From NCBI GenBank assembly GCA_002794465.1, contig MTSL01000008.1, positions 1 to 32,000 on the forward strand: a DNA stretch of 32,000 nt, read 5' to 3'. This DNA comes from Paramicrosporidium saccamoebae KSL3 (Eukaryota > Fungi > Cryptomycota). Position numbers and translations under genes: made by a program. The first letter of the stretch is position 1; each line of letters opens with the position of its first letter. Below are positions 5,766 through 28,087 of the stretch, one piece after another. The notes under the pieces are model-generated. The model worked only from the letters and a program-made list of their open reading frames with translations. It was not told the DNA's origin and did no database searches.

Positions 5766-6848
5766 ATGCCAGTCGAATCTTGCCACTCTGACAAATGTTC
5801 GATTGAAGAGACGGTGAGATTAAAAGCATGCGAGCTACGACGTCGAAGCAGCCCTACCCTCCCGACTGACATGCCTGTAAAGTCAGGCCTTGAGATTAGA
5901 CCGGCAGAGTTTTATGACTTGGAGGAGCTTGGGTGTGGATTTGGGGGGATAGTCTATAAATCTATCCATCTCCCATCGGGTCGCGTGATGGCTCGCAAGG
6001 TCATCCACAATCGCATTTCATCTGCCAAAATCCGAAAATCGCTGGCAGCCGAGCTCGCTACTCTACAAAGATGCAAGTCTCCACAAATAGTCGGTTGCTT
6101 TGGTGCATTCGTGTCAGACCTGCAAGTGTCCATCGCCTTGGAATACATGGACATTGGGTCGCTGGATTGGGTCTGTCGCACTGTGGGGCCCATATCCGAG
6201 TTGCACCTTGCGCAGGTGACAAAGGCAGTGCTTGACGGCCTCATGTATTTGCATCGCCAATGGAACATTATTCATCGCGATCTGAAGCCATCAAACATTC
6301 TGCTAAATTCCAAGGGAGAAATCAAAATTTGCGACTTTGGAGAGTCCATAGAGCTGGTCAATTCAATGGCAAAATCGCTAGTAGGAACTACCGGGTACAT
6401 GGCACCCGAGCGGATAAAAGGGCAGCCATACACAATCCGCTCAGACGTTTGGAGCCTTGGAATCACTCTCGTCGAACTGGCAACAGGAAGTTTTCCTTAT
6501 TATATCTGTCCAGAAAAGAGGGTGAAAATGACCCCAATTGGCGCCTCCGAGCCTACTAGTAATGGAGAAGAGACAAAAATGTCGCTAATCGAGCTATGGG
6601 AATCAATCAGTCATGAGCCGCCGCCTGGCCTTGATCCTGCAGCATTTTCACCTGAATTTGTAGACTTTACGCGGCAATGTCTCTGCAAGGAGGAAACATA
6701 CCGTCCCGATCCGTATCAGCTTTTGGTACACTCAATAATACTGCTAATTATTTAGGAACATCCGTTTGTCAAACAAGTGGAGAGTTTTGATACTGTACTT
6801 GCTTTAAACTGGGCAAGCAATCTTGCTCAACTCAAAAAAAGAGTCTGA
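5766..6848 (+). CDS. STE7: MAP kinase kinase (Ste7/MEK family); exons 5766-6725, 6756-6848
   Basis: HRDLKPSNILL, DFG, activation loop NSMAKSLVGT, YMAPER. A 30-nt intron at 6726-6755 yields the conserved LLEHPF. Confidence 0.88.
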
Positions 6849-7325: not shown

Positions 7326-7640
7326 TTTGCCAATTCTGCAACGCGGGGCAATATTATTTTGTAGTTTAAGCAATGTATAAAATGTAGACATTCGATTCTT
7401 TGGCGGATCGATCAAAGAGCTACTGATTGGTAATGTGTAGTTGGGGAGACCATTACGTGTTGCGTAGTGAAGGAGGGAGGTACGGTACCACGTCACGGGC
7501 GGGGAGAGAAATTGTTCGCTGTTAATTCAACAGCCCAAGTCAGACGAGAGGAAAGCTCGTTCACTGATACTCCTAAAAGGCCCGGCTAACCAATCCACCA
7601 CTTTACTCAACAAAGAACCGACCAATCAATCCGCTACGGC

Positions 7641-23224: not shown

Positions 23225-23387
23225 CCCCGGTTGCGTGGTCGAGGCTCTTGTACAAATCTCCAAACTACAACCTTGACATTTTTAGATGCTCACTAATTAT
23301 TCATGTACAGCTAATATTCATGCATATCATGGCAGCAAATACGAAGCACAACATGTTGTCATATTATTGTGTCTTTACGTTTCAGAT

Positions 23388-23459
23388 GACTCCTTGGCGC
23401 AACGGTAGCGCGTCTGACTCCAGATCAGAAGGTTGAGTGTTCAAATCGCTCAGGGGTCA
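23388..23459 (+). tRNA. tRNA-Trp(CCA)
   Basis: Full cloverleaf: acceptor GACTCCT/AGGGGTC, D stem GCGC/GCGC, anticodon arm TCTGA-CTCCAGA-TCAGA, T loop TTCAAAT. Confidence 0.95.
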
Positions 23460-23463
23460 ATCT

Positions 23464-25097: not shown

Positions 25098-25501
25098 ACG
25101 GCGTGTAAAGCATGGCAAACTTGTATAATTAGTGAGATGGCGAATACAATGAAATGGCTCGCTGATTGTTGTGTAATAGGGTAGCTACTACAAAATTGGC
25201 CACTGTCATTTGTTTGGGGCGGTAGAGATTACTTAATAATTAGTGAAGCCTTTATAGACCTTTCCACCTACACTTGAAGAACGAATCAGTTATATAGATT
25301 ATGACGTATTGATGGACCAACTGTTCCATCTGATCATTCTCTAAACATGCCTTGTACACGAATCGGTTAATGTTTGCAATAATGGCCCTTTGCCTTGGAC
25401 CCTTGATATGATATTATTGGGCCCTGGTCTTTCTCAAGTCTTGGATCTATACCGGCTATTCGCCTTACATCCATCACACTCCTCCCAAATATACATACAA
25501 G

Positions 25502-26491
25502 ATGGCTCCCATGCTTATGAACAAGAAGCGCAAGGTAACAATTCACTGGTGGAGGACAGTCTCGTGGTTGCTGGCGGGCGTCTGGAGCGATATGCCCTTG
25601 GGAACGCTTAGGGTCCTTGGCACACTCTCCAGGTTGCTATCCATCCATCCTCGGACTGCATTTCCGCCTTGTATATGATGATTCCCATGATTCCTCTCGT
25701 TTGAATGTCTTATTGCAACGGACGCACTGTGAATAACATGGTTGAGACTGATACAAATCCCTCTTCTTTTACTGGTGCTAACCTCGTAGTTTGTCAACGA
25801 CGGTGTTTTCTACGCTGAACTCAACGAACTCCTCACCCGCATGCTCTCTGAGGAGGGTTACTCTGGAGTCGAGGTCCGCGTCACCCCCCAACGCACAGAA
25901 GTTATTATCCGCGCTGCCCGCACCCAAAAGGTCCTCGGAGAGAACGGTCGTCGCATCCGCGAACTTACTGCTGTCGTCCAGAAGCGCTTCAAGTTCCCCG
26001 AAGGCTCCATTGAGCTCTTTGCTGAAAAGATGGAGAACCGCGGACTGAGTGCTATTGCTCAGTGCGAGTCGATGCGCTTCAAGCTGCTCTCCGGACTGCC
26101 CGTCCGTCGTGCCTGCTACGGAGTGCTCCGTTATGTCATGGAGTCTGGAGCCAAGGGTGTAGAGGTCATCATCTCCGGCAAGCTCCGTGGTCAGCGTGCC
26201 AAATCTATGAAGTTTGTTGACGGTTTCATGATCCACGCTGGTCAGCCCGTCCGGGACTACATTGATTACGCTGTCCGCCACGTCCTCCTCCGTCAGGGTG
26301 TCCTGGGCATCAAGGTCAAGATTATGCGCGACTGGGATCCCAAGGGAATCAACGGACCCAAGATGCCCCTTCCTGATGTTGTCACTATTATGGATCCCAA
26401 GGAAGACACTGCCGTCGTTGCTGCCGGTGTTCCCTCCACTGAGGCATTCGGTCAGCGTGCCGCAGCTCCCCAGCCTGAGATTGCTCAGTAA
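25502..26491 (+). CDS. RPS3: 40S ribosomal protein uS3; exons 25502-25534, 25790-26491
   Basis: NKKRK|[59 protein letters not shown]. Intron 25535-25789 (GTAACA...GCTAAC...TAG). Confidence 0.97.
25669..25756 (+). ncRNA. Intronic box C/D snoRNA, family member 1 (RPS3 intron)
   Basis: Box C 25675-25681, box D 25748-25751, terminal stem TTGTA/TACAA; near-identical copy at 26768-26854 on the minus strand. Confidence 0.85.
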
Positions 26492-26767
26492 AGTCCCCAA
26501 ATTCTATAATAAATACGATGAAGGTTTATTAATTCTCTGATGAGAGAGAGAGGGATAGCGTCTAGTTAGTTGTCTGGACTGTTTCTAGATGGATACCAAT
26601 CAATCTATAGACGGGCAAAGAGTCTATTGGCATTAACTACATTTACGAGAATCAGCTGGCTCGATAATAACATACTTTATTACCAAACATATACAAACTC
26701 TCACAACTATAATGGTTAGTACCAAGTTCAAATAATTGAGTGATTGGATGAGTGAAAGAGTTGGGTT

Positions 26768-26854
26768 GATGTCAGTTTTAACCTTGTTATTCACAGTGCG
26801 TCCGTTGCAATAAGACATTCAAACGAGAGGAATCAAAGGGAATCATCATTCATC
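26768..26854 (-). ncRNA. Intronic box C/D snoRNA, family member 2
   Basis: Box C 26849-26843, box D 26775-26772, terminal stem GATG/CATC; 51 nt identical to member 1. Confidence 0.85.
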
Positions 26855-26951
26855 GTTACAACCTTACTCATCGTCTCACTCAACACCATACCTTCATGTG
26901 ATTATATACAGGACAGACAACGCCTAAGGATAAGAACAGTTCAATACGCAG

Positions 26952-27056
26952 GCAGTCGAGTCATCAGTTTAACCATAGTATTCGCAATGTATCGGGTAAT
27001 GACACCTAGAACAAGAGGTGTCAGAAATCTTTGGGAATCATCATCTGGTCGACTGC
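26952..27056 (-). ncRNA. Intronic box C/D snoRNA, family member 3
   Basis: Box C 27044-27038, D' CTGA 27024-27021, box D 26967-26964, outer stem GCAGTCGA/TCGACTGC, internal stem TGACACCT/AGGTGTCA. Confidence 0.78.
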
Positions 27057-27155
27057 ATGCTGGGTACATTACCTTGGTTTCAATGGATGCACTAGGACCA
27101 TCCGGGTCAATGTTCGCTGTGGTCGCTATTTCACCAGGGTCACCTATTTAATGGA

Positions 27156-27350: not shown

Positions 27351-27959
27351 TTAAACAACGCGTCTCACCTCAAAGAAGCGCTTCAGCGAATTGATCTGGA
27401 AGTAACAGACGGCGCCCAGCATGACAATCTGAATAAAGAACCACCACATGACACGGGAATTAGTGTTCAGAGCGACTACATAATGAGTGGATAACGGAAA
27501 ATCACCTTCACGATGCTTCGTCTCACGTTCCATGAGGAAGGCGTGTTCGTCACGGACCATACGAAGACCGTCGTTGAGTTCGCGCAGTTCGTTCTGAACG
27601 GGATCAAGCTTTGTTGCCGATTCTGCAGAGCTGCCGAGGATGCTGAAGGATGGCTTTTTGGGCGGTGTTCCAACCGGGTCCATATTCCTAAACTTGAATG
27701 AATGCACTCCCGCAGTCTTGGCTGTGAGCGCATAAGAGCCATATGTCTCTGCTGGTCCTTCGAAAATGACACCCTCCGGACTACTAAGACGGAAGCCAAT
27801 GGTGCCGTCGACATTTTGGAATTGAACGCCCCAGTTGGAGCCCTTGGCAAGGTCATCAAAGAATTCAATCTCCTTGCCGGGACGCAACTCGACAGTTTCG
27901 CACTGGACAAAGGCGACTAGTGCCGTTACCAAGACGATGAATGCGTCCAAGGCCAACAT
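27351..27959 (-). CDS. TMED2: p24-beta cargo receptor; exons 27959-27506, 27475-27351
   Basis: Signal peptide, GOLD domain, coiled coil, NTNSRVMWW, TM, tail LKRFFEVRRVV*. A 30-nt in-frame intron is predicted at 27505-27476. Confidence 0.9.
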   Translation of the reverse strand: MLALDAFIVLVTALVAFVQCETVELRPGKEIEFFDDLAKGSNWGVQFQNVDGTIGFRLSSPEGVIFEGPAETYGSYALTAKTAGVHSFKFRNMDPVGTPPKKPSFSILGSSAESATKLDPVQNELRELNDGLRMVRDEHAFLMERETKHREGDFPLSTHYVVALNTNSRVMWWFFIQIVMLGAVCYFQINSLKRFFEVRRVV

Positions 27960-28087
27960 TTCCACGGTAAAGTTATAAAATTAGTTTCGTGTTATCATTT
28001 ACGCATTCCGACCAAACATTTTAGTTCAATATGTCCACCGTCCACTGTTGCGCTGTATGTTTCGGGAGCTTTCAGTATTCCTAACTT

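Follow-up and report, generated by a model that had tools for sequence, protein, structure and literature searches.

Intronic box C/D snoRNAs at the RPS3 locus of Paramicrosporidium saccamoebae carry a conserved derived guide complementary to the sarcin-ricin loop

The stretch of DNA analysed here, referred to as the window, comprises 32,000 nucleotides (nt) of the fungus Paramicrosporidium saccamoebae KSL3 (contig MTSL01000008.1 of assembly GCA_002794465.1, positions 1 to 32,000 of the forward strand). Around its ribosomal protein gene RPS3 lie three related box C/D small nucleolar RNAs (snoRNAs), and two of them (members 1 and 2) have a derived 5′ (D′) guide that is perfectly complementary to the sarcin-ricin loop (SRL) of ribosomal RNA (rRNA). 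The features of the locus are given below, where names beginning with L denote contigs of relatives, taken from metagenomes and public sequencing runs, with the same Arp/Pelota/EMP24/RPS3 neighbourhood, except where rDNA units are meant.

25502-26491, + strand: RPS3 (uS3), host of member 1; 88-91% identical to the RPS3 of relatives; Pfam KH_2 and Ribosomal_S3_C
25502-25534, 25535-25789 and 25790-26491, + strand: RPS3 exon 1, intron 1 and exon 2
25669-25756, + strand: member 1, within RPS3 intron 1; predicted box C/D snoRNA bearing the derived ("SRL-type") guide and scoring 84.8 bits against the family model
25675-25681, 25701-25704 and 25748-25751, + strand: C box, D′ sequence TTGA and D box of member 1
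25691-25700 and 25690-25699, + strand: D′ guide TTCCTCTCGT and invariant segment ATTCCTCTCG of member 1
25669-25673 with 25752-25756, + strand: terminal stem UUGUA/UACAA of member 1, present in the minimum-free-energy fold
26660-27150 (transcript ends approximate), − strand: predicted dedicated non-coding snoRNA host gene, with splice signals and with orthologues in L152, L001 and L007
27073, 27072-26924 and 26923-26892, − strand: end of host-gene exon 1, intron 1 (with member 3) and exon 2 (32 nt)
26891-26707 and from 26706, − strand: host-gene intron 2 (with member 2; branch site TACTAAC) and exon 3
26854-26768, − strand: member 2, within host-gene intron 2; predicted box C/D snoRNA bearing the SRL-type guide and scoring 88.2 bits against the family model
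26849-26843, 26832-26823, 26822-26819 and 26775-26772, − strand: C box, D′ guide, D′ sequence TTGA and D box of member 2
26854-26851 with 26771-26768, − strand: terminal stem GAUG/CAUC of member 2
27056-26952, − strand: member 3, within host-gene intron 1; predicted box C/D snoRNA bearing the ancestral SNORD60/snR48-type guide and scoring 29 bits against snoR1
27044-27038, 27027-27014, 27010-27007 and 26967-26964, − strand: C box, guide TTTCTGACACCTCT, D′ sequence TCTA and D box of member 3
27056-27049 with 26959-26952, − strand: outer stem of member 3, 8 bp, GCAGUCGA/UCGACUGC
27351-27965, − strand: last large exon of an EMP24/p24-family gene, C-terminus ...KRFFEVRRVV; Pfam EMP24_GP25L on orthologues

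Written as RNA, member 1 reads UUGUA-u-AUGAUGA-UUCCCAUGAUUCCUCUCGU-UUGA-...-CUGUGAA-UAACAUGGUUGAGA-CUGA-UACAA, the body of member 2 is that of member 1 with the stem GAUG/CAUC instead, and member 3 reads AUGAUGA-UUCCCAAAGAUUUCUGACACCUCUUGU-UCUA-...-UGCGAA-UACUAUGGUUAAA-CUGA inside its 8-bp outer stem. The coordinates and features assigned to all three by an earlier sequence-only reading were correct, including the ATGATGATTCCC of member 3 and its TGCGAATA..ATGGTT..CTGA end, and the 51 identical nt it had noted in members 1 and 2, besides both boxes, were exactly the longest identical run between them (25688-25738, matching 26785-26835 of the other strand). The C box ATGATGA and the D box CTGA occurred in all three members and were invariant in 16/16 aligned copies, which formed one family, and the D′ (U[UC][GUC]A) and C′ (RUGNRAA) boxes were degenerate, alike in canonical and derived copies. 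The terminal stems of members 1 and 2, which had been read as different yet complementary, were indeed part of a wider pattern: over the 16 copies, from nine loci, the 5-bp terminal stem covaried, with 75% of cells paired against 47% after shuffling (none of 500 shuffles reached 75%) and 31-61% in slid controls, and two-sided changes were found in all five of the five pairs. Whole-molecule folds of members 1 and 2 were no more stable than those of shuffled sequences, as expected for C/D snoRNAs.

Each member occupies its own GT..AG intron, and members 1 and 2 are situated 5′ of a CTAAC-type branch site, while no clear branch site was recognised in the intron of member 3. Intron 1 of RPS3 begins with GTAACA, contains the branch site TGCTAAC and ends in AG. 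The gene that holds members 2 and 3 has the 5′ splice sites AAG|GTAATG and AAG|GTATGG, a TATAAAA-like element near 27155 and an AATAAA at 26681-26676, is convergent with RPS3 and has no meaningful open reading frame in 26660-27150 on the minus strand. The antisense neighbour to which these two members had been assigned earlier is a separate non-coding gene with two introns and not the EMP24 gene, which is encoded on the same strand 5′ of the host gene (its reading frame ends at 27351) and serves as a synteny anchor. Considering the boxes, the covarying stems, the intronic positions and the orthologues in relatives, the three members are almost certainly genuine box C/D snoRNAs of the SNORD60/snR48 lineage, and we infer that they are expressed and assembled into small nucleolar ribonucleoproteins (snoRNPs). 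A covariance-model search found no fourth copy of the family in the window, nor any further one in L005, L014, L150 and L151.

At the Rfam gathering thresholds no snoRNA was matched in the window and a transfer RNA (tRNA) was the sole match. In E-value mode, member 3 and plant snoR1 aligned over their whole length (29 bits, E=0.0017; gathering threshold 49 bits), and for members 2 and 1 weak SNORD60 matches were obtained at 20.6 and 16.9 bits (threshold 42), their alignments being gapped within the guide; weak matches to Afu_264, CRISPR-DR6 and SCARNA7 were judged to be noise. Since SNORD60 (RF00271), snoR1 (RF00345) and yeast snR48 (RF00471) make up the Rfam clan CL00066, the family, which the sequence-only reading had not recognised, can be recognised as a relative of this clan from scores that all lie below gathering. 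The 5′ (D′) guide typical of the clan, UUUCUGACACCUC, which pairs with the large-subunit site GAGGUGUCAGAAA, is kept in member 3 and in nine copies of the relatives, but it is replaced in members 1 and 2 by AUUCCUCUCG. The 14-nt guide of member 3 (UUUCUGACACCUCU) is an exact complement of AGAGGUGUCAGAAA (AGAGGTGTCAGAAA), found in the ribosomal DNA (rDNA) of other eukaryotes, and with UCUA as D′ box its fifth pair falls on the bracketed G of CUA[G]AGG. The same G has been assigned to yeast snR48 (Gm2788) and to Arabidopsis AtsnoR1 (Gm2781). Because of the exact complementarity and the position of the fifth pair, member 3 is a divergent orthologue of this known, ancient snoRNA and is predicted to direct 2′-O-methylation of that G, whereas members 1 and 2 appear to be descendants of the family without its shared function. 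Earlier, member 3 had been singled out as the copy with a different D′ guide; the guides do differ, but it is member 3 that keeps the ancestral one and members 1 and 2 that carry the derived one. The window copies share the box C/D build with the clan and differ from it in scoring below the curated thresholds and in being hosted by the RPS3 intron or a dedicated host gene. Vertebrate RPS3 introns also host a box C/D snoRNA, U15 (SNORD15), which belongs to another family with another target; as had been stated before, the members are not U15 (no Rfam match to SNORD15), and since introns of ribosomal protein genes are common snoRNA hosts, the RPS3 host common to U15 and member 1 looks like convergence.

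Within member 3 (27006-27025, − strand), UGACACCU of the guide can pair with AGGUGUCA, which follows D′ immediately, and the predicted fold accordingly contains an internal hairpin of 8 bp (z = −2.06). The hairpin is also found in the canonical copies of L001 and L007; it resembles a self-mimic of the rRNA target and could mask the guide.

The history of the locus was reconstructed from the relatives. Among named organisms, the best homologues of the window's proteins (RPS3, 70-80% identity; Pelota, 39-43%) come from early-diverging fungi, from animals and from plants. The RPS3 intron of five relatives (L011, L013, L155, L156 and L157) contains one snoRNA, which has the canonical guide. In L013 and L157 the EMP24 gene lies directly 5′ of RPS3 with no host gene between them, and the contigs of L011, L155 and L156 do not display this arrangement. 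Four species (the window, L001, L007 and L152) have the extra host gene between EMP24 and RPS3 with one canonical and one AUUCCUCUCG copy, the two-intron gene being orthologous in L152, L001 and L007. The RPS3-intron copy likewise carries the derived guide in three of the four (window, L001 and L007), and the L152 contig ends before RPS3. As five relatives have their single canonical copy there, the RPS3-intron snoRNA is the ancestral state: the ancestor had one SNORD60-type snoRNA in RPS3 intron 1, which was duplicated into a new host gene, one copy lineage being retargeted and a canonical copy retained. Local duplication followed by guide divergence, as the sequence-only reading had proposed, is supported by the three copies of this subclade (four species) against the single copy in the RPS3 intron of five relatives.

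Several further observations were made in the relatives. The canonical copy of L007 (2715-2816) has CUGUCACCUCU in place of CUGACACCUCU, and the matching rRNA variant AGAGGUGACAG is present in some eukaryotic rDNA units (L049, L083 and L112), which suggests that the canonical guide of L007 and its rRNA target co-varied. A 19-nt unit, CTGGCCTTTACCCATGATT, is repeated in tandem about seven times in L001 (3040-3190), in the host-gene exon that separates the snoRNA introns; the repeat is absent from the window. Exon 2 of the L152 host gene (5819-5870) begins with GGTGATGATTCCC, followed by CTGA about 45 nt further on, and resembles a truncated relic copy; this putative relic was not detected by the family covariance model. 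In the GC-rich relative L005 (GCA_047514055.1, 3990-4100), whose RPS3 shows 91% identity, this gene lacks an intron, and in the 8.7 kb examined the SNORD60-type family was not found.

The derived guide AUUCCUCUCG was invariant in all seven copies from the four species, while the rest of the RNA was only 59-76% identical. Between-species identity of the derived copies (n=7) was 100% for the C box, the D box and the 10-nt D′ guide ATTCCTCTCG, against 72% for the 5′ spacer, 76% for D′, 59% for the internal loop, 68% for C′ and 63% for the 3′ (D) guide. Pelota proteins of these species are 67-69% identical, therefore neutral sequence should be saturated, and the derived guide is under purifying selection. 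Canonical and derived copies have the same guide core, CCUCU at positions 8 to 4, and both rRNA sites contain A[G]AGG, so the retargeting consisted in a change of the flanks: position 3 changed from U to C, the 5′ flank from ACA to AUU, and the spacer was shortened. The locus offers a clean and datable case of guide retargeting, with a duplication, a 5-nt common core kept, both flanks changed and then purifying selection.

The derived guide UUCCUCUCGU, directly before D′, is a perfect 10-bp complement of the loop sequence 5′-ACGAGAGGAA-3′ from D′ position 1 on. Complete 18S-5.8S-28S units of other eukaryotes were collected by a metagenome scan; as these were picked by a pattern that contains the loop, its presence in them follows from the selection, and only the absence of competing sites is informative. 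Of 39 rDNA contigs, 38 had the 9-mer CGAGAGGAA a single time in each unit, namely in the sarcin-ricin loop. In an anchored scan, pairing had to begin no more than 2 nt from D′ and to cover the fifth position. With the guides of the window, L001c and L007b, the best site was ACGA[G]AGGAAC in 25 of the 26 complete units (10 Watson-Crick and no G-U pairs), and only 0.65% of shuffled guides reached 10 anchored pairs at a conserved site. The duplex energy of the derived guide was −18 to −21 kcal/mol with the loop versus −8 to −14.5 kcal/mol with the ancestral site, and this preference was reversed in member 3 (−24.6 kcal/mol with the ancestral site versus −13.7 kcal/mol with the loop). A scan for rDNA in viral contigs gave 14 contigs and no rRNA. 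When bacterial and archaeal genomes were scanned for an archaeal sRNA sharing this guide-box junction, at least 120 matches were obtained, mostly bacterial and due to chance; none of those listed had a C′ box.

The pairs counted from D′ are U1-A, G2-C, C3-G, U4-A and C5-G. In the rat the tetraloop is G4323-A4324-G4325-A4326, from which N-glycosidase toxins remove A4324, and α-sarcin cleaves between G4325 and A4326. Given the C5-G pair and the rat numbering, the fifth-nucleotide rule points to the counterpart of rat G4325, which is residue 3 in the GAGA tetraloop. Fibrillarin of the derived snoRNP would then methylate the 2′-OH of the very nucleotide whose 3′ phosphodiester is cut by α-sarcin. 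Because the match was later perfected and is invariant, we lean towards the sarcin-ricin loop being the functional target of the derived guide, with ribose methylation as the presumed outcome. The sequence-only reading had proposed guide diversification, which the diverged guides bear out, but it had missed that the new guide complements the loop.

A number of points weigh against this assignment. With 10 bp, the duplex is close to the minimum length at which guides function, and the invariant A at guide position 11 is left unpaired with the C of the loop. One of the 26 foreign rDNA units had a better, 12-bp site, GCGAGAGGAAUC, in a variable region, and as all the scanned rDNA is foreign, a longer complement to CAUGAUUCCUCUCGU may be present in a lineage-specific expansion segment. 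The D′ boxes (UUGA, UUUA, UCUA and UCGA) and the C′ boxes are degenerate, though no more than those of the canonical copies. Even before retargeting, the guide could form 8 bp (one of them G-U) with the loop, and the loop match is thus in part an inherited coincidence, since both rRNA sites have AGAGG. Reviews state that the sarcin-ricin loop is not 2′-O-methylated in plants, the sole nearby mammalian site found was Gm4618 (SNORD91) at the base of helix 95 (H95), and no report of natural ribose methylation within the GAGA tetraloop was found in the literature searched. Methylation of a universally conserved, GTPase-activating loop might also be costly. The SNORD91 case in mammalian 28S rRNA is similar in that a C/D snoRNA guides 2′-O-methylation in the loop-bearing helix, and it differs in acting at the base of H95 rather than on a tetraloop G and in having no sequence relationship to the snoRNAs described here. 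We take Gm4618 to lie about 12 nt 3′ of the GAGA tetraloop in human numbering.

The 8-bp pairing of the ancestral guide with the loop is also what would be expected if members 1 and 2 were redundant or decaying SNORD60-type copies, acting weakly on CUA[G]AGGUGUCA or orphaned, and if the loop match arose by coincidence from the common AGAGG. Orphan and redundant C/D paralogues are common, and the derived guide of the window, L001 and L152 can still form a 10-position duplex with AGAGGUGUCA that contains a U-U mismatch and a G-U pair (−12.4 to −14.5 kcal/mol). Decay predicts variation, however, while all 10 nt of the guide, including the mismatches to the ancestral site, were invariant in seven copies of four divergent species. 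In L007, moreover, pairing with the ancestral site falls to 5 bp (−7.6 kcal/mol against the likely A-variant) and the complement of the loop is kept (−21.1 kcal/mol), and a canonical copy for the old site is retained in each genome, so that we regard redundancy or decay as rather unlikely. The unpaired A at position 11 would instead suit another target, be it a small nuclear RNA (snRNA), tRNA, messenger RNA or a lineage-specific rRNA segment containing CGAGAGGAAU, for this invariant A would pair with a U, which the loop lacks; the single foreign unit with GCGAGAGGAAUC points the same way. Human U5 snRNA, which presumably contains GGAGAGGAAC, would give 8 bp. No other conserved site was found in the 26-39 rDNA units from diverse eukaryotes, though, and a variable segment specific to one lineage is unlikely to remain constant across species so divergent, which makes a different target improbable.

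Complementarity and conservation would fit equally well a guide that pairs with the nascent loop as a folding or timing chaperone, or as a placeholder in pre-60S assembly, and deposits no methyl group. Some C/D snoRNAs act by base pairing alone, the degenerate D′ and C′ boxes might not support catalysis, and a long complement of a Tetrahymena snoRNA at the base of H95 is not accompanied by methylation. On the other hand, the duplex begins exactly at D′ position 1, its register and box variants are those of the methylating canonical copies, and there was no sign of an essential processing role; a purely chaperone-like action therefore seems to us a long shot.

Enzymes of the ribotoxin type use the 2′-OH of the G at the cleavage site as the nucleophile, for which reason a 2′-O-methyl at the G4325 equivalent should block cleavage. 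The derived snoRNAs could conceivably make the ribosomes intrinsically resistant to fungal ribotoxins, which would amount to RNA-guided target-site immunity built from a retargeted housekeeping snoRNA, but we put this forward as a speculation that is more probably wrong than right. Ribotoxins are cyclizing enzymes of the RNase T1 type, and according to a review every known ribosome is inactivated by them. If the resistance were real, susceptibility to loop-directed N-glycosidases might change as well. In the producer Streptomyces, the thiostrepton-resistance methyltransferase modifies A1067 of 23S rRNA; there, too, one ribose methyl on conserved rRNA of the GTPase centre blocks an inhibitor. 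That methyltransferase is, however, a stand-alone bacterial protein, while the system proposed here would be RNA-guided and eukaryotic, with resistance as a hypothesis. The sarcin-ricin loop is among the most conserved RNA sequences and is the target of both ribotoxins and ricin- or Shiga-type N-glycosidases, and methylation of the tetraloop would have its first candidate in a conserved snoRNA directed to the G at the cleavage site. It raises the questions whether a naturally ribotoxin-proof ribosome exists and whether a ribose methyl is tolerated in the translational GTPase centre. The family is known in kind; what gives it interest, as a computational claim, is the redirection of a conserved guide towards the site that ribotoxins cut.

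Members 1 and 2 form an inverted repeat about 1 kb apart, as the sequence-only reading had described; the arms (25688-25760 and 26763-26835) are 73 nt long, 90% complementary and spaced by 1002 nt. In L001, L007, L013 and L157, RPS3 is on the same strand as EMP24, it is convergent with NDH2 in L001, L155 and L156, and in relatives that have the snoRNA host gene RPS3 is co-oriented with it. Compared with them, RPS3 alone is flipped between the same neighbours in the window (25400-26600), where it lies in tandem behind NDH2 and is convergent with the host gene. RPS3 has probably been inverted in this species, though a mis-assembly could give the same picture. Since such an inversion turns direct-repeat paralogues into inverted repeats, the geometry of a repeat around RPS3 exon 2 was rightly described before, but it would be a by-product of a species-specific rearrangement. 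Recombination between members 1 and 2 was rejected as the cause of the inversion because they were direct repeats before it, and an exchange between the present members would invert exon 2 alone and break RPS3.

The box-to-box identity of members 1 and 2 is 94%, whereas the corresponding paralogues of L001, and likewise those of L007, share 72%, and both derived copies of the window resemble the host-gene copy of L001. We concluded from this comparison that a recent conversion tract, to which the 51-nt identity belongs, overwrote the RPS3-intron copy, sparing its stem and D-guide end, which agrees with the gene conversion already suspected from the window.

The D guide of member 1 pairs with 18S rRNA at GUCUU[A]ACCAUAAAC over 10 bp with one G-U; its 3′ guide AUGGUUGAGA (25738-25751) is complementary to the 18S segment UCUUAACCAU, and the A to which it points is near position 1000-1010. 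L007b and L156 have similar guides, but the element is not conserved in the family as a whole. The perfect Watson-Crick partner of this guide, UCUCAACCAU, is presumably a plant 18S variant. As the D guides are 63% conserved and their sites inconsistent, no functional target was claimed for them.

Elsewhere in the window, an intergenic site at 7540-7553 (− strand) has the 10-mer TTCCTCTCGT immediately followed by a perfect CTGA, a 14-mer with a chance of roughly 2e-4 per window; no C box was present within about 100 nt 5′ of it, and no Rfam match was obtained there. Pfam searches with ten other open reading frames of the window revealed housekeeping genes only. The single Rfam match mentioned above is a tRNA-Trp gene (anticodon CCA, 65.4 bits) at 23387-23460 (+ strand), located between a WD40 gene and NDH2.

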